From Macrostomum lignano (taxonomy: Eukaryota), in contig NIVC01003375.1 of assembly GCA_002269645.1 (NCBI GenBank), forward strand, positions 37,132-101,131: a stretch of 64,000 nucleotides of DNA, in the 5' to 3' direction. The position numbers and the translations under genes were made by a program. Of the stretch, positions 1,094-29,300 are shown piece after piece; positions within the stretch are counted from its first letter, which is position 1; each line of letters begins with the position of its first letter. The notes below the pieces were generated by a model. It was not told the DNA's origin. It searched no databases and worked only from the letters and a program-made list of their open reading frames with translations.

Positions 1094-4000
1094 ATGAGGC
1101 ATCCGATTGCAGCGCAGCTTCTGACTGCATTGAGTCTTCTCTGCATTGCTTACGGTAATAAACTGCTTTTTTGGTTGCCGAGCATCCCACTGGGACGATG
1201 GGTCAATTTTAGTTCAGTTAGTTCAAGTTAGTTCAAGTTTTAGTTCAATACCAGCTATTGCAGATTCAATACCAGCTGTTGCAGATTCAATACCAGCTGT
1301 TGCATTTTCAATACCAGCTGTTGCAGATTCAATACCAGCTGTTGCAGATTCAATACCAGCTGTTGCAGATTCAATACCAGCTGTTGCAGATTCAATACCA
1401 GCTGTTGCAGATTCAATACCAGCTGTTGCAGATTCAATACCAGCTGTTGCAGATTCAATACCAGCTGTTGCAGATTCAATACCAGCTGTTGCAGATTCAA
1501 TACTAGCTGTTGCAGATTCAATACCAGCTGTTGCAGATTCAATACCAACTGTTGCAGATTCAATGCCAGCTGTTGCAGATTCAATGCCAGCTGTTGCAGA
1601 TCAGTTGCATTTTTCCTCCCAATCCCACAGCAGGCAGCCCCGCCGGCCACTGCGGCAACCAGGACGGGCCACTTGGCATGATTTCGGGCGAAATCCGCGA
1701 CTGGCAGGTGACGGCTTCGTCCAGCTTCCCGGAGAAATTCTCTTGGGGCCCGGTTGCCAGGGGCATCACGCGCGACTCTACGGCCGTGACGGGCGGGCCT
1801 GGTGCCCGCAGTTCAACAGCCGCAGCGAGTGGCTGCAGATCGCGCTGGGCACGGAGGCCACGGTGACGGGGGTCATGACCCAGGGCCGCGGCGACGGCAA
1901 GGAGTGGGTCACCGCGTTCGCCGTCAACTACAGCAGCGACGCCATAAGCTGGCGGACGGTGCTGGACGAGGCTGGCAGGCCGAAGGTGAGAAGCCGAAGC
2001 TGGCAGGCCAATGCCGCTCTCTCCCATCCTTATGCTGCCCTCTTGCACTGATGGCGTCAAATTCAACTGAACTTCCAGATATTCGAAGGCAACGTGGACT
2101 CGTATTCGGTGAAGCACAATCTCTTCCAGCGGCCGTTCTCGGCCGAGTTCGTGAGGCTGCAGCCGCTGCAGTTTCACCGCCATCCCAGCATGCGAGTGGA
2201 GCTGCTGGGCTGCCAGCGTGAGTTCGCCAACAGTGGCAGTTTGCTGTTTTGTTATGATTGCTAGATTTACAGACCCGTAATAACCACCAGTCCCGGCTGT
2301 CCCAATTATGGATTGCGCGCAGTCACAAGTCCCGGATCAACTTATCAGACTGCGCAAGTCCGATGCAGGAGACTGGGACTTTATTATCGAGGCTGAATGG
2401 CAAGCCCTGTGCGCTGCTTTGCCAGTCTGGCCGATAAAATTGCTGCTTTTTCAAGTGCATTTCTAAGGATATTATTTGGCTCCCAGGCGAAGGCGGGCAT
2501 AAAAAGTCGTATCTTAAAATAACGAATACTGTTGGGATTACTGGGACCGGTATCTTTGCCTGCAATGCTGTAATGAACCAGCATCAGGGCTGTAATGAAC
2601 CAGCGTCAGGGCTGTAATGAATCAGCATCAGGGCTGTAATGAACCAGCATCAGGGCTGTAATGAACCAGCGTCAGGGCTGTAATGAACCAGCATCAGGGC
2701 TGTAATGAACCAGCATCAGGGCTGTAATGAACCAGCATCAGGGCTGTAATGAACCAGCATCAGGGCTGTAATGAACCAGCATCAGGGCTGTAATGAACCA
2801 GCGTCAGGGCTGTAATGAATCAGCATCAGGGCTGTAATGAACCAGCATCAGGGCTGTAATGAATCAGCATCAGGGCTGTAATGAACCAGCATCAGGGCTG
2901 TAATGAACCAGCATCAGGGCTGTAATGAATCAGCATCAGGGCTGTAATGAACCAGCATCAGGGCTGTAATGAACCAGCGTCAGGGCTGTAATGAACCAGC
3001 ATCAGGGCTGTAATGAACCAGCATCAGGGCTGTAATGAATCAGCATCAGGGCTGTAATGAACCAGCATCAGGTCTGTAATGAACCAGCATCAGGGCTGTA
3101 ATGAACCAGCGTCAGGGCTGTAATGAATCAGCATCAGGGCTGTAATGAACCAGCATCAGGGCTGTAATGAATCAGCATCAGGGCTGTAATGAACCAGCAT
3201 CAGGGCTGTAATGAACCAGCATCAGGGCTGTAATGAACCAGCATCAGGGCTGTAATGAATCAGCATCAGGGCTGTAATGAACCAGCATCAGGGCTGTAAT
3301 GAACCAGCATCAGGGCTGTAATGAATCAGCATCAGGGCTGTAATGAACCAGCATCAATGCTGTAATGAACCAGCATCAGGGCTGTAATGAACCAGCATCA
3401 ATGCTGTAATGAACCAGCATCAGGGCTGTAATGAACCAGCATCAATGCCGTAGTGCACCAGAATCAATGCTGTAATGAATCGGCATCACTAGGATCCATT
3501 TGAAATATGCATGAGTCCAGAGTGAAGTGCAGTGAAGGCAAACACTAATGACATCAACCCGATCATACTGACTGCCGACAGCCTGCAAGAAGTCGCTGGC
3601 TCAGCCGCCGTTCGCTCGGTTGACGGCCTCCAGCTCTCGCGGTCGGCGTGCAATGCGAACCTGCGACGCTTCGTACGGACACCTGTTCACTAGCAAGGCC
3701 TGGTGCGCCAAGCGGGTGAACAGTGAGTGACTTTACAATGTTTTTGTTGCGATGGCAACTGGGCTGGTCACCAATAGGTATAGTGCTAAGTAGGTTACAG
3801 GTAGGGTACAGGTAGTACAGGTAGGTTACAGATGTATGTTACAAGTAGGTTACAGGTTTAGGTTGCAGGCAGGTTACAGGTGTAGGTTACTGGTAGGTTA
3901 CAGGTGTAGGTTGCAGGCAGGTTACAGGTAGGTTACAGGTGTAGGTTACAAGTAGGTTACAGGTGTAGGTTGCAAGCAGGTTACAGGTAGGTTACAGGTG

Positions 4001-7000
4001 TAGGTTACAAGTAGGTTACAGGTGTAGGTTACTGGTAGGTTACAGATGTATGTTACAAGTAGGTTACAGGTGTAGGTTGCAGGCAGGTTACAGGTGTAGG
4101 TTACTGGTAGGTTACAGGTGTAGGTTGCAGGCAGGTTACAGGTAGGTTACAGATGTAGGTTACAAGTAGGTTACAGGTGTAGGTTGCAGGCAGGTTACAG
4201 GTAGGTTACAGATGTAGGTTACAAGTAGGTTACAGGTGTAGGTTGGAGGCAGGTTACAGGTAGGTTACAGGTGTAGGTTACTGGTAGGTTACAGGTGTAG
4301 GTTGCAGGCAGGTTACAGGTAGGTTACAGGTGTAGGTTACAAGTAGGTTACAGGTGTAGGTTGCAAGCAGGTTAAAGGTAGGTTACAGGTGTAGGTTACT
4401 GGTAGGTTACAGGTGTAGGTTACTGGTAGGTTACAGGTGTAGGTTGCAGGCAGGTTACAGGTAGGTTACAGGTGTAGGTTACAAGTAGGTTACAGGTGTA
4501 GGTTGCAAGCAGGTTAAAGGTAGGTTACAGGTGTAGGTTACTGGTAGGTTACAGGTGTAGGTTACTGGTAGGTTACAGGTGTAGGTTACTGGTAGGTTAC
4601 AGGTGTAGGTTACTGGTAGGTTACAGGTGTAGGTTACTGGTAGGTTACAGGTGTAGGTTACTGGTAGGTTACAGGTGTAGGTTACTGGTAGGTTACAGGT
4701 GTAGGTTGCAGGCAGGTTACAGGTTACAGGGTACGAGGTTAGCTGAAACAAACCAAGACCAAAACTGTGCAGCCAGCTCGAACAGAGCCGCCACCCACCC
4801 CCCGACCACGGATTTTAGGCGAGCAGTGGCTGGAGGTGGACCTCGGCCCGCCCGCTAGAGTTACCGGCTTGGTGACAAAAGGACGCGGCGATGGCAGGAA
4901 GGACACCTGGGTGACGTCTTACAGAGTTGCCTACAGCAACGACGGACTGTCGTGGGCCCTGTACAAAGACGCGAACCATCTTATGCCCAAGGTAAACGGT
5001 AGTTTAAGAACATTTTTGAAAGCAGCGGCTTCATTTTTATAGCTATCGAATGGACAGCAGACATGCAGTTCATTAGCAGACCACAAGGCAAGCAGTTGGC
5101 TCTGCAGTTATGATCCGAGCGTCTGGCACAAACGCGGAGGGTCGCCCACTTAGAATCATGGCTCTCACGCTGGCAAGGCGAAACTCGATCGGGCTCTGCG
5201 ACATGAATATCGGTCGGCATCTTCATCTCTGTCTCCCCCATTAGCGAATTCCGTGCATGCCAATAGGCGAGCGCACGGATTTCTCGAAGACTGGCCGCCA
5301 CGCATTTGCGCAATCCGTTATGCGCTCGGGGCAGCGCGCAACAAGTTAAAAATGCAAACACGGGCGGCCGGAAGCATCGATAAGGAGAGGATCGGCGGCG
5401 CAAGGCAAGGCAAAGTTCAGCGACATTCCACCGCCAATGCGGATGATCCCAAAGACGCCAGGGCGAGGCCAGCAGATGAGGATAGAACAGAAAGTAGACA
5501 ATTTTACTCGCAGCCATTTTAGCGATCATTTCGCAGTCTAATAATGGTCCATTACATTTCTTCGCATTCCTATTGCTGCTTTCGAGGCGTCATTAAGCTC
5601 TTCGATAGAGTACTTCGAAAGGCTTGGGGGGACTCGAATATCTCTGGCTTAATGGTTATTGCGAGATAATGAGGCCATGTAGCGATTCGAGTGTTGCAGT
5701 CGTGGGCGATTCGCTCGCGCCCAAACTCGCTTCCATATTTTATCTTTGCCGCAACTCTGGCAACATTCGACTTCGCATTTGAACTGCACTCGCACTAAAA
5801 GCGATCCAAAGACTTTCGTTTCTTCTGCTTGGCTCTGCTGGCCCCATATTGCACCGATTGATAGATGCCAAGGATATTGCAACACCGTCATTTTGTGCTA
5901 GTGGGAGCAGGTAGGACACGATGAAGTGGCCACTAAAAGGCTTTAATTTCTGCTTTTGTGTTGCCGCACCAACCCGCAGCTGTTCCGCGGCAATCACAAT
6001 CGGAACAGCGAGCGGGTGCACTACCTGTACCGGCCCTTCACCGCCCGCTACGTCCGCTTCCACCCGGTGGACTGGCACGGCGGTATCGCCATGCGAGTTG
6101 ACGTCCTCGGCTGCCACCAGACGGACTCGTGCGCCAGCGGCAGCGGCGGCGCCTTCTTCCGCGTCAGCAATTCCAGCCGCTGCCTGGCCAACCTGGCCTT
6201 CAACAAGCCGACCTGGATGGGCAGCGACGCCGCTGCCGGCGGCGGCAAGCACCGGAGGCGGCAAGTCGCCGACAGTCCCGACGGAATCACCAGCTGGGAC
6301 AAAACCGAGACCATCGGCAACAGCTGCGTGCAGGTGTCGCCCGACGCGTCTGTGGTGGGATGGCTGGTCGATCTACGATTGAAGATGCTAGTACAGGGTG
6401 TACTACTCACGGCCAGTAGGAATATCTGCGTTTTGTTCTTATATTTATGTTATACTCAATTGTAGGGCTTTCAAAACGGATTAGAGTGCATGTGTTTCAA
6501 GAGGGTTTGCTTTTCACAATAGACTGCAGAGGACGTGGCGAAATGCCTGAGTCTCAGTCAGGGTGCTCATTAAACTTTAATTTCTTCACAGACGGCACCC
6601 TGGCCGGTCCGCAGCGAAGACTGGAGGTGTACGTGGCGAGGAGATCGCGCCAGGTGATCAAGTCTGGCCGGTCGCACAGGCGCAGGATCGGGGCGAGAAA
6701 GTTTCTGTGCGGGATTGATCAGGCTGGCGCTGGCGCCGGAGCGCGTCCGCACGATCGGGTATGCTGCCTGCGTGTCTGTCTGCTCTCCCTGTGTCTGCTC
6801 ATGCTCACCCTGTGTCTGCCTGCTCACCCTGTGTCTGCTCATGCTCACCCTGTGTCTGTCTGCTCACCCTGTGTCTGTCTGCTCACCCTGTGTCTGCTCA
6901 TGCTCACCCTGTGTCTGTCTGCTCACCCTGTGTCTGTCTGCTAACCCTGTGTTTTTCTGCTAACCCTGTGTTTGTCTGCTCACCCTGTGTCTGTCTGCTC

Positions 7001-8757
7001 ACCCTGTGTCTGTCTGCTCACCCTGTGTCTGTCTGCTCACCCTGTGTCTGTCTGCTCACCCTGTGTCTGTCTGCTCACCCTGTGTCTGCTCATGCTCACC
7101 CTGTGTCTGTCTGCTCACCCTGTGTCTGTCTGCTCACCCTGTGTCTGTCTGCTCACCCTGTGTCTGCTCATGCTCACCCTGTGTCTGTCTGCTCACCCTG
7201 TGTCTGTCTGCTCACCCTGTGTCTGTCTGCTCACCCTGTGTCTGTCTGCTCACCCTGTGTCTGTCTGCCCACCATGTGTCCGCATGTTCATTCTGTTTAA
7301 TCCCACTCATTCTGTAACCATATGTTCACTCTATCCGTTCACTCTGTGCCTGTCTGTCTGTCCATCTCACCCTGTCTGTCCACTCAACCTGTCTGTCCAC
7401 TCAACCTGTCTGTCCACTCAACCTGTCTGTCCACTCAACCTGTCTGTCCACTCAACCTGTCTGTCCACTCAACCTGTCTGTCCACTCAACCTGTCTGTCC
7501 ACTCAACCTGTCTGTCCACTCAACCTGTCTGTCCACTCAACCTGTCTGTCCACTCAACCTGTCTGTCCACTCAACCTGTCTGTCCACTCAACCTGTCTGT
7601 CCACTCAACCTGTCTGTCCACTCAACCTGTCTGTCCACTCAACCTGTCTGTCCACTCAACCTGTCTGTCCACTCAACCTGTCTGTCCACTCAACCTGTCT
7701 GTCCACTCAACCTGTCTGTCCACTCAACCTGTCTGTCCACTCAACCTGTCTGTCCACTCAACCTGTCTGTCCACTCAACCTGTCTGTCCACTCAACCTGT
7801 CTGTCCACTCAACCTGTCTGTCCACTCAACCTGTCTGTCCACTCAACCTGTCTGTCCACTCAACCTGTCTGTCCACTCAACCTGTCTGTCCACTCAACCT
7901 GTCTGTCCACTCAACCTGTCTGTCCACTCAACCTGTCTGTCCACTCAACCTGTCTGTCCACTCAACCTGTCTGTCCACTCAACCTGTCTGTCCACTCAAC
8001 CTGTCTGTCCACTCAACCTGTCTGTCCACTCAACCTGTCTGTCCACTCAACCTGTCTGTCCACTCAACCTGTCTGTCCACTCAACCTGTCTGTCCACTCA
8101 ACCTGTCTGTCCACTCAACCTGTCTGTCCACTCAACCTGTCTGTCCACTCAACCTGTCTGTCCACTCAACCTGTCTGTCCACTCAACCTGTCTGTCCACT
8201 CAACCTGTCTGTCCACTCAACCTGTCTGTCCACTCAACCTGTCTGTCCACTCAACCTGTCTGTCCACTCAACCTGTCTGTCCACTCAACCTGTCTGTCCA
8301 CTCAACCTGTCTGTCCACTCAACCTGTCTGTCCACTCAACCTGTCTGTCCACTCAACCTGTCTGTCCACTCAACCTGTCTGTCCACTCAACCTGTCTGTC
8401 CACTCAACCTGTCTGTCCACTCAACCTGTCTGTCCACTCAACCTGTCTGTCCACTCAACCTGTCTGTCCACTCAACCTGTCTGTCCACTCAACCTGTCTG
8501 TCCACTCAACCTGTCTGTCCACTCACTCTGCTTGGCACAAGCTTTAAATGCACGCAATTTGAGAGCCCCAAACAATTTTTGTCTATGGTTCAAAACTAGC
8601 CAATCACAATCCGCAGCTTCAGAGCACAATGGTCGCCTGCGGCAAGCCGATGTACGGTCGGTTCATCTACATCGAGGCGAGCACGGGCGGGACGGTGGCC
8701 AGCCCGGGCTCAGCCGGTGCTCCGCCATCGGCAATGTGCAATCTTAGAGTCTACTGA
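1094..8757 (+). CDS. Secreted tandem discoidin (F5/8 type C, FA58C) x2 + F-type lectin (FTP)-like protein, ~537 aa, 8 exons
   Basis: Exons 1094-1154 (MRHPIAAQLLTALSLLCIAY, signal-peptide-like), 1631-1985, 2079-2217, 3582-3722, 4819-4991, 5980-6415, 6592-6758, 8617-8757 (TGA). All introns are GT-AG with matching phases. FA58C motifs: GPLGMISGEIRDWQVTASSS, AWC, EWLQIALG, VTGVMTQGRG, FVRLQPLQF..PSMRVELLGC; second copy EQWLEVDLG..RYVRFHPVDWHGGIAMRVDVLGC. FTP-like: NLAFNKPTW, WLVDL, CGKPMYGRFIYI..CNLRVY. One base missing at ~1745-1752; exon sum 1613+1=1614 nt. Confidence 0.88.
1246..1602 (+). repeat. 21-bp minisatellite (TCAATACCAGCTGTTGCAGAT), ~17 copies, intron 1 of the discoidin gene
   Basis: Direct reading; gives IPAVADS repeats in the ORF track. 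Confidence 0.95.
2565..3480 (+). repeat. 22-bp minisatellite (GGGCTGTAATGAACCAGCATCA), ~40 copies
   Basis: Direct reading; intronic. Confidence 0.95.
3788..4735 (+). repeat. ~24-bp composite minisatellite based on GTAGGTTAC
   Basis: Direct reading; TCNLPVTY periodicity on the minus strand. Confidence 0.93.
6772..7270 (+). repeat. 19-bp minisatellite (TGCTCACCCTGTGTCTGTC)
   Basis: Direct reading; starts just after the 6759 donor. Confidence 0.93.
7371..8526 (+). repeat. 17-bp minisatellite (CCACTCAACCTGTCTGT), ~68 copies
   Basis: Direct reading; no unit variant noticed. Confidence 0.97.
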
Positions 8758-9634
8758 GCTCGGCGACTTTGGCACCGCCGTCTCACTCTGCTGTATTGTG
8801 CGAACTTGCGAGTAGTTCAAGTCTGGCAACTAGAAACTTGAGAAGTTTGACGCACCTAGAATTCGCTTTGCATGCCTTTCTGCTTGAGCAAAAATTGTAA
8901 AAAAAGAACAACACGAACGCAATATTCGGGCAATTTTGCTAAATATATTGCGCAACCTCAGCTCAGTACATGAGTGTCTTCTAAAAATTATGACTCGCTT
9001 TAACTTCAAGTGCTGTTAAAGTTTTTATGTAAATTAGCTCGTTTTTACTGCAGTTGTTGGAAGTGCATACAGAGAAGATGCTTTAAATAATTTTAAGAAA
9101 AAGAGGCCAGTTGGTTTTGGTAAATTGTAAAATGCCTGAAAAACTGAAGATGATGACTGGTAGCTCATATATATTATATTAAAAAATGAATAATTGCAGG
9201 ACAGATGAGAAACCTAAAAAAACTCTACCTGTTAATCAGTGCATCAATGGTGTCTGGCTTTTCCTGAAACAAAAGTTTTTGTGATGCCCACTACAGCAGA
9301 CTATCGTAGAAGATGCGAGTAGAGTTGAGACAGAAGAAGTTATGAATACAGGTAACTTTTTGGACAATGTCGCTCTCATATCATCTCGAATCCTCTGATT
9401 CAGAAGTCTCCGGTTGGTGCAGATGCTGCAAATGACAGGCTGACAATGCAGATTCAAGGTTGACAACTGCATCAAAACAAGCAAAAATGATCGAACCATT
9501 TCGCTTACCTGCATAGGCACAGATCTTCCCAGCGCAGAAAAGGCGAGTCTTTCGCAAGTTGTCAGCATTCCATTCTGAAACAGGAGCGGCACAGATGAGC
9601 TTTACAAATGGCAGGTGCAACTGAGGCTTTAGCT

Positions 9635-12600
9635 TCAGCTTACCCGAGACTTGTACTCTCGAAGGAACTCGTCAAAAAGTCTGCTGGCAGCGATGCAGTC
9701 TCTGTGCTTGTGCACCAGGCGGACCAGCAGCTCATCGTCCTGCCAGTAGTTCAGCGCCATCTGAAGCTCCTGTGTGTCAGGCTCGCTGCTGTTGAGCAGT
9801 TCTTCAAACAGAGCAGCACGACTGCTTGGACTGCTCAAGCCGAACTCCAGCTGCAAAGTCTTCATCAGTGCGTCGAAGTTCACGTAGAAGTAGTTCGTAT
9901 AGGAGTAAGTTGGAGCTGGGAAAGCTTCACTGATGTGGCAGGGCAGAAATTCGAAGACCGGCTTTTCGTTAAACTTGAAGCAGAATTTCATGGCAGAGTC
10001 GGTGCTTTGAAGGTGATTCCAAATTAGCACTTTTGCTTCATCAACAGATAGGGGTTGGTCACGTGGACAGTGAATGTCTCGACTGCCACGCTGGAGGCTT
10101 ACTTCAGCATCCAAGCGCAATGGTAGTCCGAATTTCAGACACATCAGGGCTCTCAGGCATTCCCTTGTCGTTCTGGCACAATCTGGTAATCTGTTGATCA
10201 AATTCTCCACGATATTTTGTGTTTCAGCCTCTATGTCGGCAGCATCTTCAGCCAGTTCCGCAATCACACGCTTGATGATGGGGTAAATTTTGTGGCACGG
10301 CAGTTTGACTGCTTCGTCCAAATAAGAAGACGTGTCGGATGTTGAGATGAGAATTGTGAAAGGGTGAAACCTGATCACGCCGCCCGAGGCTTGGATTCGC
10401 AGAATACTTTTGTACTTTGCGAGCAGGTCCGGCAAATCTGACAGCACACCTGTCACCACGCGACTGATCACCTCTTTGGACTGGTGATCGCCGCGCAAGT
10501 ACACTGCGGCGTCCCGCAGGAAGAAGTGCCTCATGCACTCGCTCCTACTCTGCGTCACCGTTCTGAGACCGTCTTGCAACAGCTGTAGTGACCGTCGAAC
10601 TAGCAGCAGCAAGTTTTCTGGCTTCCAGAGCTCTTTCGGAGTCTCGTCGAGCATATAGAAAAGCAGGTTTTTAGCATGGTAGGTCTTTATTCCAGTGGCT
10701 TGCTTTGCTATCACTTTCTTGATGAGGTACTTTAAGACGATAAACAGCTGTCCTTGAACAGTGGAGAGGCGCTGCATCACTGCTCGCTCGAGATGCGTGG
10801 TGCTGACGCGCATGCGGCTGCCAGCCATTCCCGGCGGCGAGGCCGAGACTGCATGGCACTCCGAGTTTTGCAGGCAGCCGCGCAAGGCCTCAAGCATAAC
10901 GTCTGGCATGCGAGACCGATAGGAGGGCTGCAGCACCTGCGCTGGTGGGTAGTTGCAGCACGGGTGGGCTCGAATCTCATCGATTGCGGGGCACAACGGC
11001 GATCCCTCGTTCATTTGATTTGGCCTCGTAACTGAAGTGATGGTGGGAGTTGTGATGGTGCCAGCTGCTGTAAAACTGTTGTAGTGAATTCGGGCATTTT
11101 TCTTTTGCAGCCCCATTCATTACTGTCTGAGGCTGAGAATAAATGCCGAGGGTCTCATCCTCATGCCAACAGCTATAACCGGCTTGCTAAGAGTTCGCAT
11201 GACTGATTGGCTTGGTTACCGTGCAAGCGTGAGTAGCTCCTGCTGCTCCCTGATGCTATACTACGGAGGTGGAACGGGAGCTCCTGATTGAGACCCGAGG
11301 GCAAGAACTGTAGCTGGGTGCTTGGGAGCTGGGTGCTGAGAGCACAAAAAAATCTATCCGTGTATGGAGTTGAAAAGTATGATACTCGTACAATGTAGAG
11401 TGGTTGGTGACTTTAGGAGAATTCACTAAGCTCACCATTGATGAGAAACTCGACATGTCCATTCTCGTAACGAACCGGAGTGCATTCGTTAGGGCAGGTG
11501 GTGCTGCTGTCCGAGTCAAGCGAGCTGACAATATGCAGCTTTGTTCCGGCCAAAATTCTTGTGATGTCGATGTCAGAGTCGTCATCGATCCGACCATCGA
11601 TTCCCGTCAGACTGCTGCCCCAACCGTCGGCAAAGCTTCCAAAGACGAAGAAGTCCCTGCACTCGCACCTCAGTCTGATCAGGTCTTGAAGAACTGCGCC
11701 TGAGCCTACCTGTAAAGTGGCTACTGCTTGGTTGAATCCCGCATCAGACATGGCGGAGGACAGTATGACTGAGAGTCGCCTGTCCTCTTTCGCCACATCA
11801 GTAAATTCGTCGCGGAATTCGATGTCCTGCCGACAGGAACCAGCAGCTGTCTGACAAGTCTTCGGATTCCAGAAGAGCTCGATGAGGTGAAACTGGCCAA
11901 ATGCTGCTGCAAAGTGAAGAGGTGACCAGCCATCTTTGTCAACAAGTTCTACATTAGCCCCTGCTTCAATAAGCTTAGCAACAACATCAGTTGGCCCGCC
12001 TTGCAGCATGGCCACATGAAGCGGAGTCCATCCATCGAATTCGCGAATGTCAATTTGACAGCCGGCCTTGATCAGAACTTCGGCAACTGCGGCTTTGCTC
12101 TGCTGGGAAACAATGTGCAAGGCGGACCAACCGATGTTTTCCCTGAGATCGATTTCTGCCCCAGATTCGATCAGCATCGAGACGACGTCAGCATGGCCGT
12201 GATTAGCTGCGAACTGCAAAGGCGAATCGCCTGCGTTCTCTTGCATGTCGACGTCTGCACCATTTTCTATCAGCAGCGATACAATGCGATCGTAGCCGTG
12301 CTGAGCTGCCATGAAAATTGGCGAATCTCCACTCGAGTCAGGACTGTTGACATCGGCCCCGGCGGAAATTAGGACGGCCACGACTTTGGCGTGACCACTC
12401 ATCGCTGCACTGTGTAGGGGTGTCGATTGGTTGCCATCTGAGCACTGAATATTTGCTCCTGCCCGAATTAGCGCCTTCACCACAGTCACGTGCCCATTCT
12501 GCGAGGCGTAGTGGAGAGGAGTCATTTGACGATTGTTGCACGTATCAACCGAGCTGTCGCTGGCGATAAGAGCTGCAACGATATTATCAAGTCCATCTTC

Positions 12601-13380
12601 TGCCGCGACGCCAAGCGCCGACCAGCCAATCGAATCTGTAGCATTCGCACTGGCTTGAGCTGCCAGCAGAACCGAAACAAGCTCGGCATTTCCTACCAAC
12701 ACCGCATTTTGCAGTGCCGATATCCCGTCATCGTTTGCAAGATCGACATCCGTCATGTTGGCTATCAATAAGCTGACTACCGAAGGATTGCCACCCAGAA
12801 CGGCAGCTTGAAGGATAGTGTTTCCCGCGGAGATGATAGCTCGCTCTCGGCGATTATTGCTTGCCTGACGACGACCAACATTGCTAACCGGAAAACAAAC
12901 GTCTGTTTGAAAGTTCAAGTCCGCCCCGGCCTGCACTAGAGCCACTGCAGCACTAAAATGGCTGTTGAGGGCGGCTGCGAATAGCGACAAGTTTAGTTGC
13001 ATCTCCGACACAGGGCAGATCTCAGATAGGAGGAGCTGCACCATCTCGGAATTGCACAGGGCAGCAGCCTCGGTCACTGGGGTCTCACCGGACAATGTTG
13101 CGAGGTTTGAATCCGCCTGAGCTGCCACCAGCAAGCGCAGAGCTTGCAGATGACCTCGGCGGACTGCCAAATGGACGGCCGTTGATCCGTCTGTTGTGGT
13201 TGCATCGACATCAGCCATGGCTTCGATCAGGGAGCGAACCGTTTCAATTTCATTGCGCCACACTGCCGAATGAAGTTGAGTCCATCCGGTAGCTGGGTCT
13301 CTCTCTTCTGGACTGTTCTGCTCATGCAGCCACTTGCGAACTGATGAAGTCCGAGTCTCTGCATTGACGTCGGATTGCAT
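9635..13380 (-). CDS. Ankyrin-repeat + cGAS-like/Mab-21 nucleotidyltransferase (cGLR) protein, ~1125 aa, 2 exons
   Basis: Exon 1 13380-11436 (donor G|GTGAG, phase 1); exon 2 11067-9635 (acceptor TTTTACAG|, phase 1; alternative NAGNAG acceptor 3 nt downstream); total 3378 nt in frame. ~14 ankyrin repeats (e.g. GWTQLHSA, MTPLHYAS, GWTPLHVA). NTase motif FGSFADG...DSDIDIT; third acidic residue in IDEIRAHPCCNYP; Mab-21 C-lobe motifs MRVSTTHLER, LKYL, IKTYHAKNLLFY, MRHFFL. Confidence 0.88.
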
Positions 13381-18160: not shown

Positions 18161-20030
18161 ATTTCGGCGACAAGTCATTTCGGCGACAACCATTTCGGCG
18201 ACAAGTCATTTCGGCGACAACCATTTCGGCGACAATACTTTTGAACAAATTTATTTAAATTTATTAAATCAAATAAAAGAAGTCACAAATCCGTCAAATC
18301 GGCAGAAGCGCGGAACAAATCGGCAACAAATGTAAGTAAAAGATTAAAAGTAAGATTAAAAGTAAAATACCTTACTGTTCCACAGGGGCATTCATGCAGC
18401 TGCAAGCGAGCAGAAGTCCCTCTAAAGTCCTGGTGCTGGCCTCATACTCCGCCCAGAGACGGAAGTAGGCCTCCTGCCTTGCATGCACTGCTGGCCGTGC
18501 GTCCCGACGAGTGGCACCCTGGCTAAGTAGCGCTGCATCAATCTCAACCTGGTGGGCCTCCTGGTACAGCAGCTTCAGCAGCAAGTAGAACTGCACATTA
18601 GCCCTCATAGCACGGCGCTATAGCTTGTTGTGCCAGCCCTCAGTATCATTGTTTGTTCTAATGGCTAGCCGATAGACTGAGAGCTCCTGCACTCGCCAGC
18701 TGGAGCCGCAGATCCACGTGCCCTGGACGTAGTCACAGAGGCCATTCAGTTCAACATCGGTGACCGTGCTCCGCAGTGTATAGAAGGCATTCGCGATTCT
18801 GTTGCCAGGCAGAAATGGCAATGCCATGAGTTGTCAGCAGAACGTCTGCGTGTCGTCATCATTCGAGTATGCTGGTGCGAGGCCAGTGGTGAGGATGCGG
18901 CGGTAGATAGCCTGGGTGAAATGAAAGGCACAACCATGCCGCGTAGCTGTTGGAAACTCGGTGTGTATTGCTCGCCACACCGCTGCCTCGTAGTCCATCA
19001 TGCACTCAGATGGCCGGCCATAGAGGACATCACGGGCGAAAATGAAGACTAAGCGGTAGTCCTCGTAGCCTCTATCAGACATTAGCACCATTAGCAATGG
19101 CACCTGCTTTAAGTGCCCTTCAGGGCCGACAACAAATGTGTGCAGTGAGTACAGCTGCTGAAATGGCGCTGGTACAACACTGAATGTGCCGTCCAGTTAC
19201 CAGTTTGTCGCGCGTCGGAGATAGTGTAGCATTGCGGGTGTTGCCATCAGCAGATGTCGTCGACCAGGTTCTCTGATGTCATGCACGACAAAGTTCTCAG
19301 GCACCGAGGCATGCAATTTGAAATTGATGTCGGCCGGTTCCTCCGGTCAGTCTGCCGCACGCTTGCGATTGGCAGCAGCTCCTCGCATGCAATCTGTGGC
19401 GCCGACGTGAAGAGCTGCTGCTTAGGCCCTAGCTCGCGCTGCAACAGCCTGGCGCAGCCTCTTCCTCTCAGCAGGCCGGTACTGCTCCTCATGGTTGTGC
19501 TGTGCGGGGCCTGGCGTGAACAGGTTGCCTCGCTGAGTCACTGTGGCCTTGCATGTCGCCTTGGCATTACGCGTTGTGCACCTCCAGTACACCACCTCTC
19601 CTCGTCTGCGGCTGATGACAAAAGTAAATCTGCTGTCCACAACAAGCGAGTCCTTGCCTCTGGTTGAACCGCCACGAACAATTTCGAATGGTACTGCAAT
19701 TCGTGGTGCGAGATGTTGAGGCGGGGGTACTTCTACTGGGACAGCACCTTGCCGTTTCTGTTCTTGCCAATCAATTCGCTCAGGGTCAGGCTGCTCAGGC
19801 TCAGGCTGCTCAGGGTCAGGCTGCTCAGGCACTGGCCATGAGCACAGGCTGCACAACCAGTCGAAGCTCTCCAGTCTCTGTAGCTGGCGGTAATGCTGCT
19901 GTGTCACGCCGCTGTTGCAGGTCCTATGCTGCCACCTGGAACATTCGTCACATTGCAAATGCACTCGTCCACCATTCTTGGAAAAAGGCATTTGTAAATT
20001 TTTAAACAACAACTGTAACAAGTAAAACTA
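18161..20030 (-). mobile_element. Degenerate Mutator-like (MULE) transposon: PHD finger + FLYWCH + MULE transposase
   Basis: PHD-like CDECSRWQHRTC..WLCSLC; FLYWCH-like YWRC..CKATV..HNH; MULE core LDGTF, MMDYEAAVWRAI, GCAFHFTQAI, RTNNDTEGWHNKL. Premature stops (e.g. TGG TAA CTG GAC ~19197; TGC TGA ~18832; TAG ~18619). Five CATTTCGGCGACAA repeats at 18160-18235 look like a subterminal repeat. Confidence 0.85.
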
Positions 20031-20392
20031 ATGCGTACTAAAAATAAAATACTTATGAACTGTTTTAACTTTAAGCCTAATTTAAAATTTCAATTAAGTT
20101 TAAAAAATTGTTTCTAAGCTCTAACGTTTGCTTGGGCTAAATCAGTAGTAGTTTTGTCTTGATCAGTTTACATTGCTAACTTCACTACCAGAGTTACAAT
20201 CCAGAGTGTAAAAGTCCGCAAATTGATAACTCGTAATTAAACCATAATCATTTTGATCTCTCTCAGCTCGATCGAATTGACCCATATTAGTCTACAAACT
20301 CAAGTAAAACAAAGTCAAATTTTGTTTCTAATTTTAACTTAAATTTATATAGACGTATAGTCCTATAGACTCCAAGTTTTCTAGCTGGAAAA

Positions 20393-23300
20393 ATGAGCAA
20401 CCCAACTTTTGAAGCTGCATTAGCTAAAGCAAAACAGGTAAGGCATTGGGAAGTCTGTTATAATATACTTTTGTAAACTTTCACAAATTTCATGTCCTTG
20501 CAACTTGTCTGTTATTGCTAGGTAATTAACAGGTAGCGGGCTTATGGATCCAGAGAATTTTGAATGAACTATATGAACTATAACTTTTGCCAACACATTT
20601 TCTGACACATCTTTTGACACTTTTTACAACTCTTAAAATGTTGCAAAAGTGTCAGATGTGTCCAAAAATGTGTCAGTAAAAGTTATACAAATTTTTTAAA
20701 GGGGGTACAGATTGCCCATAGTCCGGAAGGTGGCCTTTACGCCGGAATTTTCCGGCGTAATTTTGCACTTGCTGACAATCTTGGCATACATTTGGCATAT
20801 AGAATATTCAGGTTCAACATGAAGTGTAAACAACCGGCGTACAAGAAATAGAAAAGTTCAGGGCTGATGCAATCGTGTAATTAAATATCAATTAACCAAA
20901 GCTCTTCTGAATATAAACAGTTAACAAAACAGAAAATATTAACAAAATTTACGAGAAAAACAAAATTAAAACAAAGAATATTAGTTTTTGGAAAAAATCA
21001 GCCATTTTCAAGTAAATAATTATTTTTAAGTTTTAAAAAATACAAATTCTTTAAAAAGTTGGCGTATAAACAACTTTTGACTTAGCGTAAAAAATTTTTG
21101 AACTTTACGTCGGCGTAAAATTGAAAAGACACGAATTTTCACTCCGGCGTACGCCTGCCATGATCCGGACTATGGCAGATTGCTTAAGTACATATATATC
21201 ATATATTATATACCATAGGCCTAGTCCGGATCATGGCAGGTGTATGCCAGAATGAAAATTATGTTTTTTCAATTTTACGCGGAAACTAAAATTGTTTATA
21301 TGCCATTTTTTAACATATATATATTTTTAGGAACTCAAAACTTTTACTAAACTTTAAAACAGCTATTTTTGCTAAAAACTAATATTCTTTGTTTTAATTT
21401 TTATTTTCTCGTGATCATATTCATATTTTCTATTTTAGTTTTCAATTATTTTTAAAAAGCCTTCAACGTTGGTTGTAGTATTCCGCCATAAGGAGGGTCC
21501 ATGTACCATAGCCATAGCCATAAGCAAAACTATGGCTTATTCCAATTCTCCATATTCTGTAGCCGTAGGGACCCCAAAATTATCATATTCCCATAGTCCC
21601 TATAGCTATAGCTATAGTTTTAACAAAAAGTCTAGAAAACAAAATATTTTGAATCAAAAAGATAACCTAGTGCTTAAAAAACTACAAATTAAAAAAATAA
21701 AAAAAACACTCAATTGCCCTTGTAAGATTATATTTTGTCTTTTTTAGAGCAACAATACTTAATCGTTACTGAAAGTACTAATGCTAAACTTTTTCACATT
21801 AATTAAAATTAGAGTTTGCTAGTGTTTTATTGTACTTTTTTAGATATATTTCTAAGTTTCTAGGTGGATAATACAGTTTACTAAAAGTATCTTGTTTTAT
21901 TCTACCTGTTTCTAATATTTTTTCTATTTTTTAATATTAATAACTATGGCTACAGGAATTTACAGAATGTGACAGCAACTACCATATTTCTGTAGTTATA
22001 GCCATAAGAGCAGCTAGTTACCGTAGGTATATCTATAGCTGCCATAGGCACCTATTTTACTATATTTGCCGTAGGATCCCATAGTCGTAGCTACAGCTAG
22101 TTGGAACACTAGTTGGTTGATATTTAACTACACAATTATATTAGCCTTGAACTTTGCTATTTTTTGTATGCCGACTGTGTACACTTCATGTTGAACCTGA
22201 AAATTCAATATGCCAAATATACACCAAGATTGTTAGCGAGAGCAAAAATTTCTAGCGTAAAGGCCACCTTCTGGACTATAGATTATATATACTATATCTA
22301 TATGTATAATAATGTATATTTTCTATAAAAATAAAAAAAATTCTAATGCAATGGAAGGAATACAATCTACTTTGGTAATAGCCACTTCAGTAACAGCTAC
22401 TTTGGTAACAAAGCAAATTTATAACTATTAACATTATATTTTCATGGTAGCTAACTTTAGTAACTAATTAGTAACTAACTATTACTTTAATAATTAACTT
22501 TTACACTATTTTATTGCCAAGTATGGTTTAACTTTCTAGTTAAACTAAATTATAATTTGTTTAAATCTGTGATTTAAATTTGTAAAAAATTTAAAGGTAG
22601 CAAAGAACAATGTCAATATACATTATAGTCCAGATCATACTAGGTGCATACCTGAACAAAAATTGAATAGTTATAAATGTATGCCAAAAAATTTAGTGCA
22701 TGCCCATTCTCAAAAATATATTGGTATTGCAACAATAAATGACCTTTTATGTTATGACAATAAATGACTTTTTTAATTGCATAATAGATAATTTGGTTGA
22801 TTTTTATGCTTTTTTGGCAATACTATTTACAAATTTACAGTATAAAATTGATACATGCAAAGATTTGTTTCAATGCTTTTAACAAGCTTGAAAAAACTAG
22901 AAAGCTTAAAATTTATACTTAATAAATAATTTTTTTTCATTTTTTTCTACTTTATAATAACATTTACATATGATTCTATAAAGTGCATGCCAGGTATGCA
23001 TGCATGCTATTTTCTTAAGAGTGATGCATGCCAACTATGCACGCCTAATTTTGAAGTGGAAGGCCAATGCATGCCCAATTTTTTGGCATATACTACATGA
23101 TCTGGAGTGTGGAATATGCAATTGTTTGAAAGTAAATTTTGAATTAAGTAATTGTAAATAAAGAAATATTAGATTTGATTAATGAAGTCACTAACTGATG
23201 TATTCTGATATATTTGATGTACAGTGTATATAGAGATTCTGATGTATATAATATTTAATTAACAGGATGTCTCAGCTTGTATGCATCTAGTATACCTGGA

Positions 23301-26300
23301 AATTAAAATAAAAATACATTATTTTAAAATACACAAAGCTTTTAGCATCAATCCAAATCTCAAAGTTTGCAAGAACATATCTCAACTATTTTTTGTCATT
23401 TTTTCTTTAAAGTTTGTTTGCAAAATCTTTTTTGAGCATATCAATCAATATGGCAAAATCAAAAAATTAGGAGCAAGTTTTTTGAAAATTCATTTTTTGT
23501 GTTTTGAAAGCAGTAAAGCTATAAAATAAATTTAGCTTAGTTTAAGAAGTTAAAATTTTTCTATCCATTATCTGTGGATATCTTATTTAAAACTATTTGT
23601 GTCCAATTGGAACTTTTCACTTGGGTCTATTCTGTTTTTAAGAATTGAAAAATATGAGACTAGCTGCATGGCCTTTGCTTTTGCTTTTTTTCAGTGGAGG
23701 AGATAACTAAAAAGATCACCAACTTGATTTGATTAGTTGGCTTAGCAGAAAACTTCTTTAAGGCAATCTGAATAGTTTTTCTTTTCAGGCTAAGTAGATA
23801 AATTAGAGTAAATTTTTCAACTGGAAACCTTGTATAAAAGGTATAGCCATAGGTGGTTTCTTTTGAAATCATAAATTTTGTACATATAGCCATAAAGAGT
23901 AGCTATTTTCCATAGACTTGTCTATAGCTTCCATAAATACAAATACATTTAGTTTCAGTAAGGTACCATGGCAAAACAAAAAATATTATCAGCATAATAA
24001 ATATAGCATTTTTCAAACCAATTGAAAAACACTGTGAAACCTATCAGTTAAACATTATAGTGCATTGTGCAGAAAAACTTTTTTACAGACATCATTTTTG
24101 GTCTCCAAAAGTTTACATTCTCAGCTGCAACCTAACAGCACAAATAGGTAAAACGAGTGATATAATAACAGTTTATGCATTTTTATAACCATTGCCATTT
24201 ATATTAAAGTTTTTGCATGAAAACAAGACACTGGTTGGTAGGAAACTGCTAAACTAGCAGCTGAGTTGAGTTCATGCGTCTTGTCCAACAGATTGCTGCC
24301 AGTCTGTCTGCCTCTGCGCCCGATGGAGGCGGAGCGGCCGCATCTGCCGACCCGACTGCAGGCGCCAAGCGCAGCTTCAACTCCAGCAACTCCGACGATG
24401 ACGACTCGCCGGCTACAAAGCGCAGCTTCGCTGGTCCCGGTGGCGACTCTGCAGCGGCAACAGCGGGAGCCGCCTCTGCTGTGACGCCCGCCAGCAGCGC
24501 CAAGTTGGCCGCCGCCGCCGCAGCAGCCGCCAAAATTAATGAGAAGCTCTGCGGCAGCGCCGCCGGCGGTGGTGCAGCTGCGGCCGCGGTGAAGCCGCCG
24601 ATGCTGATGACCTCCCTGGCTGACGCGGCCCCTGCGGCGCCCAGCCACACTGTGGAGCACAAAATCCTCGACCGCTATGTCGGCCTGATGATTGGCCGGG
24701 GCGGCGAGACGATCACCAGGCTGCAGGCAGAGTCCGGCGCCCGCATCCAGATCAGCTCGGACAGCGTGGACGGCACCCGCAATGTGACCATCTCGGGCGG
24801 GCAGGCCGAGGTCGAGCGGGCCAAGCGGATGATGGACGCCATGATTGCCGAGAAGGGTGGAGGCGGAGCCGGCGATCGGAGCCGAGGCGATCAGGCGCAG
24901 GAAAGCATCGAGATTAACATTCCGGCCTCTAAAGTTGGCCTATTGATTGGCCGAGCAGGCGAGAATATTAAAAGCTTACAGGAGAAATCCGGCGTCAAAA
25001 TGATTTTGATTCAGGACGGCACAACGGCTTCGATGTCTGAGAAGCCGCTTAAGATAACTGGTGAGTCGGAGAAATGCTACGCATGCATGCAACCGGTTAG
25101 AAGATAGAAGTTTGCTGTAGGGATTTTGGGTTCTGACGCGAATGAAATCGAGAGTCAGCCCCCAGCCAGGCAGGTGGCAAAGTCTTGTCAGTCACATACA
25201 AGATGTACAACAACCCCCGACTTTCTTATTGTGAGCCAAATCATGGTTTGTACACTACATTATAAATAAAAAATTTTGCTACTCATAATCAAGCAGGAAG
25301 CTCTAAATGATAAAGTAGTCTTATAGGAGGAAAACAGCTCGTTTTTTGGAAATTTGAAAGTTCCTTTCAGGTGAAGTAAATATATACGCTTTTATTTTGT
25401 TTAAGCCGTCAAGATTGACTTGTGTTTTAATAAACACTGGTCGGTTGCCATGGATTTTATTTAATTAACTTCTGCTGTCAGCTAATCAGATGACAGATGA
25501 ATTCACAGCAGAATGGAACAGTGGGTTAATATCATAATATTTGTAGTAATGTTTGCTCAAAACATTGGGTAATGTTAATTTACTTATATACGAGTATTGC
25601 ATATAAAAAAACTAAATAGATGATGCTTTTTAATGGTTTATTCATATTCGCTGAAGCAGTGACAGCCGTCAATCCAACTACCGGTACTTGACTTGATATT
25701 CACGCGACCCCTGGTCAGCACAAACCTGCTTGGACGCTTTGGACGCAGCAGTCCCATTGGACTCCAACGCGACATAGCGTACTGTTGGGACACGTACGTG
25801 ACAAATATTGCCTGTCGAACTTCGACATTCTCTTGCAGTACCGCTATCTGCTGAGTGAGCAGTCCGACGCCAAAGTTGAGCAGGAACACCGCTACCCACA
25901 AGTAAACAACTGCCTGAGGCCACAGCACTAGGTAGTCGCTAATTCCGCTGAATTCACCCAAGGTAAAGGTGTAACGGAACGTCCGACCCAAATAGTCCAT
26001 CGCGCAGACCCAGGAGAAGCTCTGGCAGGTGACGTAAGGCTGATTGAGCAGCATAGTGAAGCCAACAAGAAGCAGAGGCAGGCAGATGATGTATATCAGC
26101 GTTACGCAGGCATTAAGGCAGTGCAGCACATAGAACACAGTTTGGCAGTGACCGGCCATCTTGCAGGCAAACAGCAGCATCATCATCACCATGAACTCTG
26201 TATCGATTATAAATACAAGCTGCAGTCTCACAGACTCCACAAACCAGTCACTGCCCACCTGGAAATAGCTGCCTGGGTCCAGAAAAAATAGCTGCTCCAG

Positions 26301-29300
26301 CACTAGCGCTGCGATCTGGATGCCAAAGAATCCTAGCATGACGCCCTCAAATATGCAGCCCCGCAGAGTTGCGAAGCCCTTAATCCATAGCAGGCCCTTC
26401 CATCTCTGACGCATCAGCTTCGGCGTGGCGTAGTGATTGATGAATCCGGCCGCAATCCAGTACAATCCGGCAAGAATTGTAAACACCTGGATTGATATTC
26501 TAATGTAAAATAAGTAGCGATAGCTTGCAATGAATTCAGGGGACACGACATCAATAAAGGCCAAGCTGTAGTTCTTCTGGCCCGGGATTTTCACCTGCAC
26601 GCTCGAGTTGAAGGTGTTCATAGTAAATATTCTGATATTAAGTGTGGCCAGCAGGAAAATAAACGTCAGCGTGTTGAACGCCAGCGAAATCAAAGTGGCC
26701 AGTTGGTACTGCGCATTGTTGCCGATGCTGCTAAAGTACGCTTGTGCAACAGGACTTTTGAAGAAGCACAAGTAACTTGGTGGCAGTTTGTCTCCAATGA
26801 GCTGCTGTGCGCTTAAAACGAATTTCACGAACGGAGACTTTAGGAAGCGATCTCCACCAGAGCTGGAGTAGCGGCTGAGGTCGACCTCCTCGACCAGCAG
26901 GCTCGGGTCGGTCGGGTGCTCCCGCTCCCTGATCAGGTATCCGGGCGCATTGGCGAACGCTGTCGCCAGGTGGAAGCAGTCCCTGGCCGCCGCGTACTCC
27001 AGCGGTGTCAGGCAGTCGGCCGTCAGCTCTTCGCTCAGCAGCCGAGCGCACGCGTCCGGATGGCGGCGCGACAGTCTGGCGAAGAGCCGAGCGAGCTGCG
27101 CCTCGTCAGTCGGGCTGGCCAGGCTGGAGCAGCAAAAGTCCACCAGGAGGAACAGGGCGCAGCGGGCGCGGTCCCACAGACCGAGGCTGTCGACCAGCTC
27201 GACTGCTCGGCTGGCCAGCTCGTCGTCCCGAGCGAGCAGCACGAAACAGAACTGTGACAGCTTGGGCTGCCGATCTGCCGCCGAGCTGTAGTCGGCGGCG
27301 CCGTCGCAGAATCGGCAGTCGCTGTGCCGCAGCAGCTCCGGATGCTGCTGCAGTTCTGCAGCAAATTGCGCATAGTTCCCAAAGTGCAGCAGCTCCATGC
27401 TTCTATCTTGAAGCTCCATTGCCGATATCTCGTCGGCATCCTTGATTTCTAGTATTTCATCCTTGCTGTTGCCTTCATTCCAAGCCAATTTTCTTGCCCT
27501 GTTGGTAGCCGCACCTTGGACAGCGCTCTTAGTCTCGCCCGAATTCGACATTGATTCTCTGCAGCCGTCGATTTATAAAAGCCAATATTAGCCTTTTAGA
27601 CTGGCTCATCGTCACTGCATTTATACTGTGCTGTTGGTCAGCAATAACGGTTTACATATATGGCCACTTCAGTAAATTGGATTTGCATCGAGTGCCTACT
27701 TTAGAATGAGTTGAATGCTCTTGTACGTGACAAATAAGCAGTTAGTCATTGTCATTGTTGATCGGGTATGATGTAGTTAGCTTAGCTGGGCGACAGTTTC
27801 CATCAGCTAATGAGCTTGATTTGGATTAGTTAATCTGGACTGCTGTGCTAAATAGAAATCGACAAAGTAGTCATTGACATCGACTGCAATGTTCTCGTGA
27901 GCAATTCTCTCGATGCTTTGAGCAGACTCTATTTCCATGGAAACATTGGCAACTGATCAATTTGGTCGCAGAAGTATTCTGCGTGGTATTGGAAAGATAA
28001 AGAATTAACTGTCAGCGCAGCGATGTGAAAAAATGTCAGGCAGTGGTGCAAAGTCGTCAGAAGTGAAAAAACGCCCCCCCCCCCCCATTTAAAATTAGGC
28101 ACCCCCGATCGGTTAAACTACGCTCGCGATCTGGTGATGGAGCTGCTCAACTCCAAGGAGCAGCAGCCCTCTGGCGGCTTCGGCCAAGGCGCTGGCGGGC
28201 CCAGGGGACCTGGCAGTTTTGGCGGCGGCGGCGGTGGCGGCGGCTATAGCGGCCGTGGCGCTTTCGGCGGCAATCACTACGGCGGCAGCAGCGGCTACGG
28301 CGAGAGTTTTGAAGAGATTAAAGTGCCTCGCCGATGTGTTGGCGTTGTCATTGGCAAGGGCGGCGAGATGCTGCGCAAGATTAATCAGGACACCGGGGCC
28401 AAGGTGCAGTTCAAGCAGGAGGGACCAGGTGATCGAGACCTGCCCGAGCGCACTCTGCAGGTAAGCTTGCAAGCTGTCTTTACAAGCTATCAAGACCAGT
28501 GTTGCCTCGTGTAGTTCCAGCGCCTTCATTTCATGATAACAATTATTAGAAATGTAGTATCGAACCGTCCTTAAAATCACATTTTTATGGTTAAAAAATC
28601 GCCCCTTTTTCTTCTCAATGAAACTTCATTATAGAGCTCTCTTGTGCTGTTCGCAATTACAATTGAGCCCCTAGATATTGGCTTGGAAATTGGAAACCGC
28701 CGTTCCATTACCCTTCACCACCGCCCTAATACCCTTCACCTCCCCATTACCCTTCACCACCGCCCTAATACCCTTCACCTCCCCATTACCCTTCACCACC
28801 GCCCCAATACCATTCACCTCCCCATTACCTTTCACCGCCGCTCATTACCTTTCATTGCCGCCCCATCACCCTTCACCGCCGCCCCATCACCCTTCATTGC
28901 CGCCCATCACCCTTCACCGCCGCCCCATCACCCTTCACCGCCGCCCCATCACCCTTCATTGCCGCCCCATCACCCTTCACCGCCGACCCATCATCCTTCA
29001 TTGCCGCCCCATCACACTTCATTGCCGCCCCATCACCCTTCATTGCCGCCCCATCACCCTTCATTGCCGCCCCGTCACCCTTCATTGCCGCCCCATCACC
29101 CTTCATTGCCGCCCTATCACCCTTCATTGCCGCCCCATCATCCTTCATTGCCGCCCCATCATCCTTCATTGCCGCCCCATCATCCTTCACTGCCGCCCCA
29201 TTACCCCAACGCAGATCTCCGGCAACGTGCACTGTGCTCAGATGGCCGTAGAGCGAGTTCACGAGCTCATCAACGCTGTTATGAACGGCGAAATGCCCTC

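Follow-up and report, generated by a model that had tools for sequence, protein, structure and literature searches.

The 64-kb stretch of Macrostomum lignano DNA analyzed here (64,000 nt of contig NIVC01003375.1, called the window) carries on its minus strand an intact three-exon gene whose product is a cytosolic protein of 1125 amino acid residues. The protein is composed of three parts: an acidic array of ∼14 ankyrin repeats, a core of the cGAS/Mab-21 fold with a complete GS...[D]x[D]...[D] motif, and a family-specific domain of ∼260 residues. The gene belongs to a set of paralogues that arose by a large lineage-specific M. lignano expansion of ankyrin-fused cGAS-like receptors (ANK-cGLRs). 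Its structure, domain architecture, fold, active-site conservation and family membership were all computed in this study. The following features were located (coordinates are those of the window; ANK, ankyrin; NTase, nucleotidyltransferase; AF2, AlphaFold2; pI, isoelectric point):

9381..13380, minus strand: complete coding sequence of the ANK-cGLR gene, three exons encoding 1125 aa (spliced translation with a single terminal stop).
11436..13380, minus strand: exon 1, codons 1-648 and the first base of codon 649, carrying the ankyrin array and the NTase N-lobe (one uninterrupted reading frame).
11032..11435, minus strand: intron 1, 404 nt, GT..AG, phase 1 (junction as in P0001/P0002; homologous intron in locus L001).
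9644..11031, minus strand: exon 2, the remaining NTase core, the Mab-21 C-lobe and most of the C-terminal extension.
9426..9643, minus strand: intron 2, 218 nt, GTAAGC..TTTGCAG, phase 0.
9381..9425, minus strand: exon 3, 14 codons (HLHQPETSESEDSR) and the stop (exact match to the C-terminus of P0001/P0002).
11866..13293, minus strand: ankyrin-repeat region, ∼14 repeats, residues ∼30-505, pI 4.6 (Pfam).
11437..11805, minus strand: part of the NTase N-lobe in exon 1, with the spine helices, beta1-GS-helix and beta2 with DID (AF2 secondary structure; hhalign to cGAS).
11635..11640, minus strand: G581-S582, the GS motif of the activation loop (aligned to the cGAS GS; invariant in all paralogues covering it).
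11566..11574, minus strand: D603-I-D605, the first two acids of the catalytic triad (placed on mouse cGAS E211/D213; SD[IVM]D invariant in paralogues).
10979..10981, minus strand: D666, the third catalytic acid (AIDEI), in exon 2 (placed on mouse cGAS D307 by both hhalign runs).
10508..10744, minus strand: Mab-21_C (PF20266), residues 745-823 (Pfam E 8e-6).
9644..10381, minus strand: family-specific C-terminal extension, residues ∼866-1111, an alpha/beta domain that continues into exon 3 (AF2).

In the list of open reading frames (ORFs), the gene appears as two minus-strand frames, 13380..11413 (655 aa) and 11116..9635 (493 aa). A preliminary description of this DNA had assigned both to one gene, and this was confirmed at those coordinates. 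The length of ∼1125 aa that it derived from the two ORFs also stood, but its two-exon structure did not, as a third exon of 14 codons (9425-9381) had been missed. When the segments 13380-11436, 11031-9644 and 9425-9381 were spliced and the coordinates re-translated, a product of 1125 aa with one terminal stop was obtained. The coding sequence runs past the ORF stop at 9635 and closes at 9381 via exon 3 (intron 2 donor CGG/GTAAGC at 9644/9643, acceptor TTTGCAG/CAT at 9426/9425). Across the 3375 coding nucleotides and three exons, no stop or frameshift was found, and the splice sites are canonical. An in-frame stop lies 5 codons upstream of the ATG at 13380, and full-length paralogues align with the window protein from residue 16-17 onward. 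Compared with the UniProt gene model P0001 (876 aa, N-truncated), the spliced product showed only 2 substitutions (A679V and W1078C) over 876 aa (residues 250-1125). P0001 carries both Ank and Mab-21_C domains, and the ankyrin–NTase fusion lies within the single uninterrupted ORF of exon 1 and is therefore independent of splicing; the gene was thus not hidden, as the preliminary description had put it. The segment with FGSFADGWGSSLTGIDGRIDDDSDIDIT follows the ankyrin array in that same uninterrupted frame.

For intron 1, the donor and the phase given in the preliminary description were retained, but its acceptor was not. The donor is AATG/GTGAGC at 11436/11435, and exon 1 is 1945 nt long, so the intron is in phase 1. 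The supported acceptor is CACTTCAG/TT, with the intron ending at 11032, which is 36 nt downstream of the acceptor proposed before. Three lines of evidence support this position. The UniProt models P0001 and P0002 read ...GHVEFLIN-VTRPNQ... at the junction, without the 12 residues AAGTITTPTITS. In an alignment of 15 sequences, none of the paralogues had an insertion at the exon 1/2 junction, and the junction codon V was aligned with L/A/V/I. The NCBI-annotated paralogue P0005 (38% identical, locus L001) has a phase-1 intron at exactly the aligned codon, with the junction PGY-A-SSPA (G/GTAAAT...TTTTAG/CC). The earlier acceptor, TTTTACAG/CAG (intron end 11068), would also keep the frame open and follows a reasonable polypyrimidine tract; as all three lines of evidence contradict it, it was ranked second, although a minor in-frame isoform using it is conceivable.

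The ankyrin array was readily recognized by Pfam, with E-values of 1.9e-117 for Ank_2 and 3.7e-74 for Ank and 10-11 matched stretches in the 655-aa ORF. The tandem 33-residue repeat typical of ankyrin-repeat proteins is present, and its periodicity gave ∼14 repeats between residues ∼30 and ∼505, the number that had been proposed.

As also proposed, the exon junction splits the NTase domain: the GS (11640-11635) and DID (11574-11566) motifs are located in exon 1, and the third Asp (10981-10979) is located in exon 2. The window protein carries the motif VFGS-X20-DIDI-X58-IDE, which is near-invariant among 15 paralogues, with D666 kept in at least 90% of them. When the protein was compared by hhalign with a small cGAS/cGLR alignment, a probability of 96% and an E-value of 3e-9 were obtained. 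In the extended (low-mact) run, the only one in which the N-lobe was aligned, 300 columns were covered (residues 33-360 of the 620-aa region). G581-S582 fell on mouse cGAS G198-S199, D603-I-D605 on E211-F-D213, D666 on D307, and MRVSTT of the window protein on the cGAS WRLSFS motif. The putative catalytic triad is intact in the hhalign comparison with cGAS and near-invariant in the paralogues. The C-lobe matched Mab-21_C (PF20266; E 8e-6, 26.4 bits against a cut-off of 24.1), as did 14 of the 15 paralogues. A phmmer search of the PDB sequences with the 608-aa region gave no match, and among the defence-system profiles of PADLOC-DB, including the CD-NTases of bacterial CBASS (cyclic-oligonucleotide-based antiphage signalling), no family was matched at E≤1. 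Although the paralogues are only 27-43% identical overall, the G, the S and the three Asp residues are near-invariant among them. This conservation points to purifying selection acting on catalysis and is the strongest computational argument for such selection.

The N-lobe also contains near-invariant H137, C169 and H203 and mostly conserved C168 and C201 (numbering of alignment A1). The His and Cys residues correspond to H642, C673-C674, C706 and H708, at ∼11457-11455, ∼10960-10955 and ∼10861-10853 of the window. Judged from the alignment, they could be a family-specific metal site; they do not lie at the position of the cGAS zinc thumb.

An AF2 model of residues 506-1125, built on the paralogue alignment, reached a mean predicted local distance difference test score (pLDDT) of 82.5 and a predicted template modelling score of 0.86. 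The secondary structure of the N-lobe (H22-41, H46-67, E72-75, H77-80, E98-104) and the overall topology fit an NTase core, with a strand, the GS-helix, the DID-bearing strand and a later strand bearing D666. The Foldseek comparison suggested in the preliminary description gave 93 PDB matches at E≤1e-3 and recovered the expected structures. The best 50 of these 93 were all cGAS, MAB21L1, Cv-cGLR1 (8gjw) or Sp-cGLR1 (8gjy), with 360-400 columns, a target-normalised template modelling score of 0.5-0.56 and a probability of 1.00; E-values against cGAS, Cv-cGLR1 and Sp-cGLR1 were 2.6e-7 to 1e-5. No OAS or poly(A) polymerase was found among the best 50 of the 93.

Vertebrate cGAS (6ct9, 4k9b) shares with the flatworm protein the bilobed NTase fold, the GS loop, the acidic triad, the C-lobe helix bundle and the WRxSFS-type motif, retained as MRVSTT, at ∼12-15% identity in the structural alignment. 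Features of the vertebrate type, namely a zinc thumb and a strongly basic DNA-binding surface, were not found. The zinc-thumb segment HX5CCX6C aligned to a gap in hhalign, the basic N-terminal tail is missing, and the core is near-neutral (pI 8.07, charge +2.4, compared with 8.95 and +9.6 for the catalytic domain of mouse cGAS; paralogue cores range from pI 5.5 to 9.4). The whole protein has a pI of 5.2. As a proxy for nucleic-acid sensing, the core pI of 8.07 is compatible with binding and with its absence alike. Beyond cGAS, the flatworm protein has an insertion of 8 residues between GS and DxD, the ANK array and the C-terminal domain. MAB21L1 (5eog/5eom) has the same fold and was among the best Foldseek matches, but the triad of the flatworm protein is complete. 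The class of Mab21L1/2/3-like proteins with an incomplete catalytic motif does not accommodate the window protein, in which both the triad and the GS loop are kept in full and conserved.

The C-terminal extension (residues ∼866-1125, ∼260 aa) is conserved among the paralogues, with the motifs FHPF, RLPDCA..ARE.LRA...LKFG, DSAWKFCF and YVNFDAL. Modelled alone, it reached an AF2 pLDDT of 74. It gave no Pfam match and no PDB sequence match below E 0.9, and the best Foldseek match of its model to a PDB fold had an E-value of 1.1. In the profile search, C-terminal stretches alone matched the M. lignano proteins P0114 (UniProt: GB1/RHD3-type G domain-containing) and P0148 (Ig-like domain-containing), so the domain may be a mobile module.

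All named database relatives of the window protein in the first search were from M. lignano, P0001 being 98% identical; P0001 and P0002 are 96-98% identical variants, with an internal deletion in P0002. An exhaustive profile search of 1.84 billion representatives yielded 886 proteins at E≤1e-3, of which 85 reached E≤1e-30, and the named proteins sampled among these 85 were all from M. lignano. Many of the profile matches are 1000-1300 aa long, with the match beginning near residue 500-570. Several paralogues align with the window protein across the ANK array, the core and the C-terminal extension together, and the architecture is therefore ancestral to the large M. lignano expansion. A tandem paralogue was searched for within the window and not found; a single copy is present. 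The next relatives outside Macrostomum are in bivalves (Ruditapes, Mercenaria, Sinanodonta) and the annelid Lamellibrachia (E 1e-12 to 1e-26, with 1e-12 to 1e-18 for the nearest named proteins in the profile search). The bivalve cGLR radiation consists of ∼700-aa ‘uncharacterized’ proteins (‘C3orf59/MB21D2-like’ in Crassostrea). They have the GSxxEG...SDxD motif type in common with the window protein but are much more distant and mostly lack ankyrin arrays. One bivalve/annelid match, P0157, covers profile positions 187-523 and thus takes in a portion of the C-terminal extension as well as the core.

Several other observations were made within the family. P0016 (347 aa) shares 41% identity with the C-lobe and C-terminal extension; its contig of 1065 bp bears the label ‘MAG: Kangiellaceae bacterium’, but the sequence most likely got into this bacterial metagenome bin as contamination from a eukaryote (flatworm-like). 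In P0020, an M. lignano model of 1346 aa, a short ankyrin stretch separates two complete, tandem cGLR units; the model is either a multi-cGLR fusion like OAS2/3 or the product of two neighbouring genes merged by the annotator. At locus L001, more ankyrin-like tblastn matches (4293-5710) lie upstream of the annotated start of P0005 (BOX15_Mlig031899g1), so the NCBI model of P0005 may be N-terminally truncated. In the P0005 gene, unlike in the window gene, an additional intron separates the ANK array from the NTase region.

The published census (Li et al., 2023, Cell; preprint PMC9980059) used three criteria to define cGLRs: an active-site motif, homology that covers both lobes, and structural homology as predicted with AlphaFold. 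The motif was h[QT]GS-X8-20-[DE]h[DE]h-X50-90-h[DE]h, and final curation required a G[S/G] loop and the triad [E/D]h[E/D]-X50-90-[E/D] (Li et al., 2023; PMC9980059). In the window protein, the motif is present with small deviations and agrees fully with the looser final rule; homology extends over both lobes (hhalign 96%, Mab-21_C above its cut-off, PF03281 unmatched), and structural homology is predicted by AF2 and Foldseek. With these three features, the identification as an ANK-fused cGAS-like receptor made in the preliminary description is upheld, and we regard the identity as an ANK-fused cGLR paralogue as very probable.

The novelty implied there is not upheld, given that ANK-cGLR fusions and the M. 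lignano family were already included in the census (Li et al., 2023; PMC9980059). Ankyrin-repeat or tetratricopeptide-repeat modules occur in some cGLRs, ANK-cGLRs were shown in the coral Stylophora pistillata, and the ankyrin modules were proposed to mediate protein–protein or protein–ligand interaction (PMC9980059, Figs 1C, 4C). In the available part of Table S2, Ank_2 domains are given for at least 6 M. lignano cGLRs, and several M. lignano enzymes, including #89-91 in the available part of Table S3, were cloned without the ANK arm for a screen by thin-layer chromatography (PMC9980059). The ANK-cGLRs of S. pistillata and other invertebrates have the same architecture of ankyrin repeats and cGLR core, and are likened to the window protein by architecture alone; the coral proteins belong to another phylum, their fusion is probably independent, and they are also biochemically uncharacterised. 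The cloned M. lignano cGLRs PAA86972.1 (BOX15_Mlig012742g2) and PAA45980.1 (BOX15_Mlig022265g3) are 31-34% identical to the window protein over ∼400 aa (E ∼1e-60) and have in common with it GS[FY]x[DE]xWG..L...G......[DA]D[IV]D and the extension at the C-terminus (...RLPDCA...); Table S2 gives Ank_2 domains for them. They and the window gene are distinct paralogues, the window gene having the longer ankyrin array (∼14 repeats). Its product was represented only by an N-truncated UniProt model, with no NCBI protein among the matches, and it is therefore probably outside the published list.

Elsewhere in the window, a 338-aa ORF at 41156-42172 (plus strand) contains Mos1/Tc1-mariner transposase domains (HTH_48, DDE_3, Transposase_1), which indicate a mariner-type transposon copy. 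An ORF with two or three KH RNA-binding domains (KH_1 E 2.8e-31) at 24274-25107 (plus strand) and one with an F5/8 type C (discoidin) domain (E 2.7e-16) at 1146-2051 (plus strand) are probably exons of unrelated neighbouring genes. No Pfam match was found for the ORFs at 25638-27551 (minus strand, 637 aa) and 6972-8747 (plus strand, 591 aa), the latter of which lies within a region of strongly negative GC and AT skew. AT-rich blocks (20001-24000, 32001-34000 and 42001-48000; GC 0.28-0.37) alternate with blocks of ∼0.50-0.56 GC; the former are presumably intergenic or repeat DNA, and the latter gene bodies.

We favour the reading that the window gene is an ANK-cGLR paralogue with a ligand-gated messenger mechanism, and assign it as a whole a probability of about 0.65. 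For the mechanism taken by itself, ligand-gated synthesis of a nucleotide second messenger by analogy with known cGLRs, we consider the odds slightly better than even. With respect to catalysis, ligand type, product and receptor, we infer the following course. The enzyme would be inactive at rest, until its ankyrin arm, its C-terminal domain or both bind a ligand. Double-stranded DNA appears a somewhat less likely ligand than a protein or another molecule that is not a nucleic acid, because the enzyme lacks the zinc thumb of cGAS and is acidic as a whole. As suggested in the preliminary description, the ankyrin repeats could be a protein-ligand sensor or an autoinhibitory arm. Binding of the ligand would reposition the GS activation loop, and the core would then synthesize a second messenger, a cyclic di- or oligonucleotide, that is received by a protein further downstream.

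Several observations weigh against this reading. Among the Pfam models proposed for checking the domains, Mab-21_C and Ank were matched, but PF03281, the Mab-21 NTase-domain model, was matched neither by the window protein nor by 14 paralogues. With the family profile, PDB sequences were reached only at E 0.01-0.08 (Sp-cGLR1, cGAS) and only in the C-lobe. The motif departs from the published consensus in having F instead of [QT] before GS, and its GS-to-DxD spacer of 20 residues is at the upper limit, owing to a family-specific insertion of ∼8 residues. In the available parts of the census, the cloned M. lignano cGLRs bear no active-enzyme label and the species is not mentioned among the 15 characterised enzymes (PMC9980059). 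That the ANK-less constructs fall outside the active set fits the lack of a proper ligand, and fits inactivity as well. Neither cGAS nor STING was found in the planarian Schmidtea mediterranea in a 2026 study (PMC13563047). According to the available parts of the census, cGLRs and STING are absent from the parasitic flatworms surveyed, and the cestodes of Table S5 score 0 for cGLR and 0 for STING (PMC9980059). Literature searches turned up nothing specific on STING or cGAS in Macrostomum, and no homology search for STING was made in M. lignano.

The strongest competitor, though an improbable one, is a catalytically silent Mab-21-like scaffold or adaptor that signals by protein–protein contacts of the ankyrin arm and C-terminal domain, as proposed for MAB21L1 and crustacean Mab21. 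It would account for the MAB21L1 structures among the best Foldseek matches, for the two large non-catalytic modules that flank the core, and for the absence of M. lignano enzymes from the active set in the available parts of the published screen (PMC9980059). It also has a precedent in shrimp Mab21 proteins, which, according to the available part of a 2026 paper, activate IKK-epsilon outside canonical nucleic-acid sensing (PMC12928593). Yet Mab21L1/2/3 have no predicted functional active site (PMC9980059, Figure 1 legend), and retention of the GS loop and the three acids in nearly all 15 paralogues, at the identities given above, is hard to explain without selection for catalysis. That the gene is merely a non-functional duplicate (pseudogene) in a highly duplicated genome, with frames intact by chance or recency, is very improbable. 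Many near-identical copies exist in M. lignano, among them P0001 and the internally deleted P0002, but the reading frame and splice sites of the window gene are undamaged, only the 2 substitutions separate it from the database model, and the catalytic and structural residues are intact.

It is less likely than the silent scaffold, and clearly likelier than the pseudogene, that the protein is an active nucleotidyltransferase with a product not of the STING type (linear 2′-5′ oligonucleotides as made by OAS, or nucleotidylation of protein or RNA) that acts by a non-STING route. The GSxx[DE]G...SDxD form of its motif resembles that of OAS, poly(A) polymerases and terminal uridylyltransferases. 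The best structural matches are nevertheless cGAS, cGLRs and MAB21L1, with OAS and poly(A) polymerases missing from the best 50 of 93, and Mab-21_C is the single Pfam family matched by the C-lobe, with no match to the model of the OAS C-terminal domain. The family moreover passed the published cGLR curation (PMC9980059). The absences in planarians (PMC13563047) and, in the available parts of the census, in surveyed parasitic flatworms (PMC9980059) speak for such a route, since they mean that M. lignano cannot be assumed to have a STING partner.

The ligand-gated ANK-cGLR reading can be extended, tentatively and with a chance well below even, to a private M. lignano family of dozens of paralogues in a phylum that otherwise lost cGAS and STING, with a catalytically competent cGLR core between a variable ankyrin arm and the C-terminal domain, which would sense non-nucleic-acid (protein) ligands and pass a nucleotide messenger to a non-STING receptor. 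If true, this would be a distinct branch of cGLR immunity, and the C-terminal domain, without a known fold relative, would be a new regulatory or effector-coupling module. The window gene itself contributes only one more paralogue and a corrected exon structure; its conserved C-terminal domain is still unannotated. The 2023 census left as its main question the orphan cGLRs, whose triggers are unknown; of these, the ankyrin-fused ones are candidate sensors of proteins instead of nucleic acids. M. lignano is a transgenic laboratory flatworm amenable to RNA interference, and its planarian and parasitic relatives lost cGAS and STING; the ANK-cGLR family is therefore tractable for the questions of ligand and receiver.

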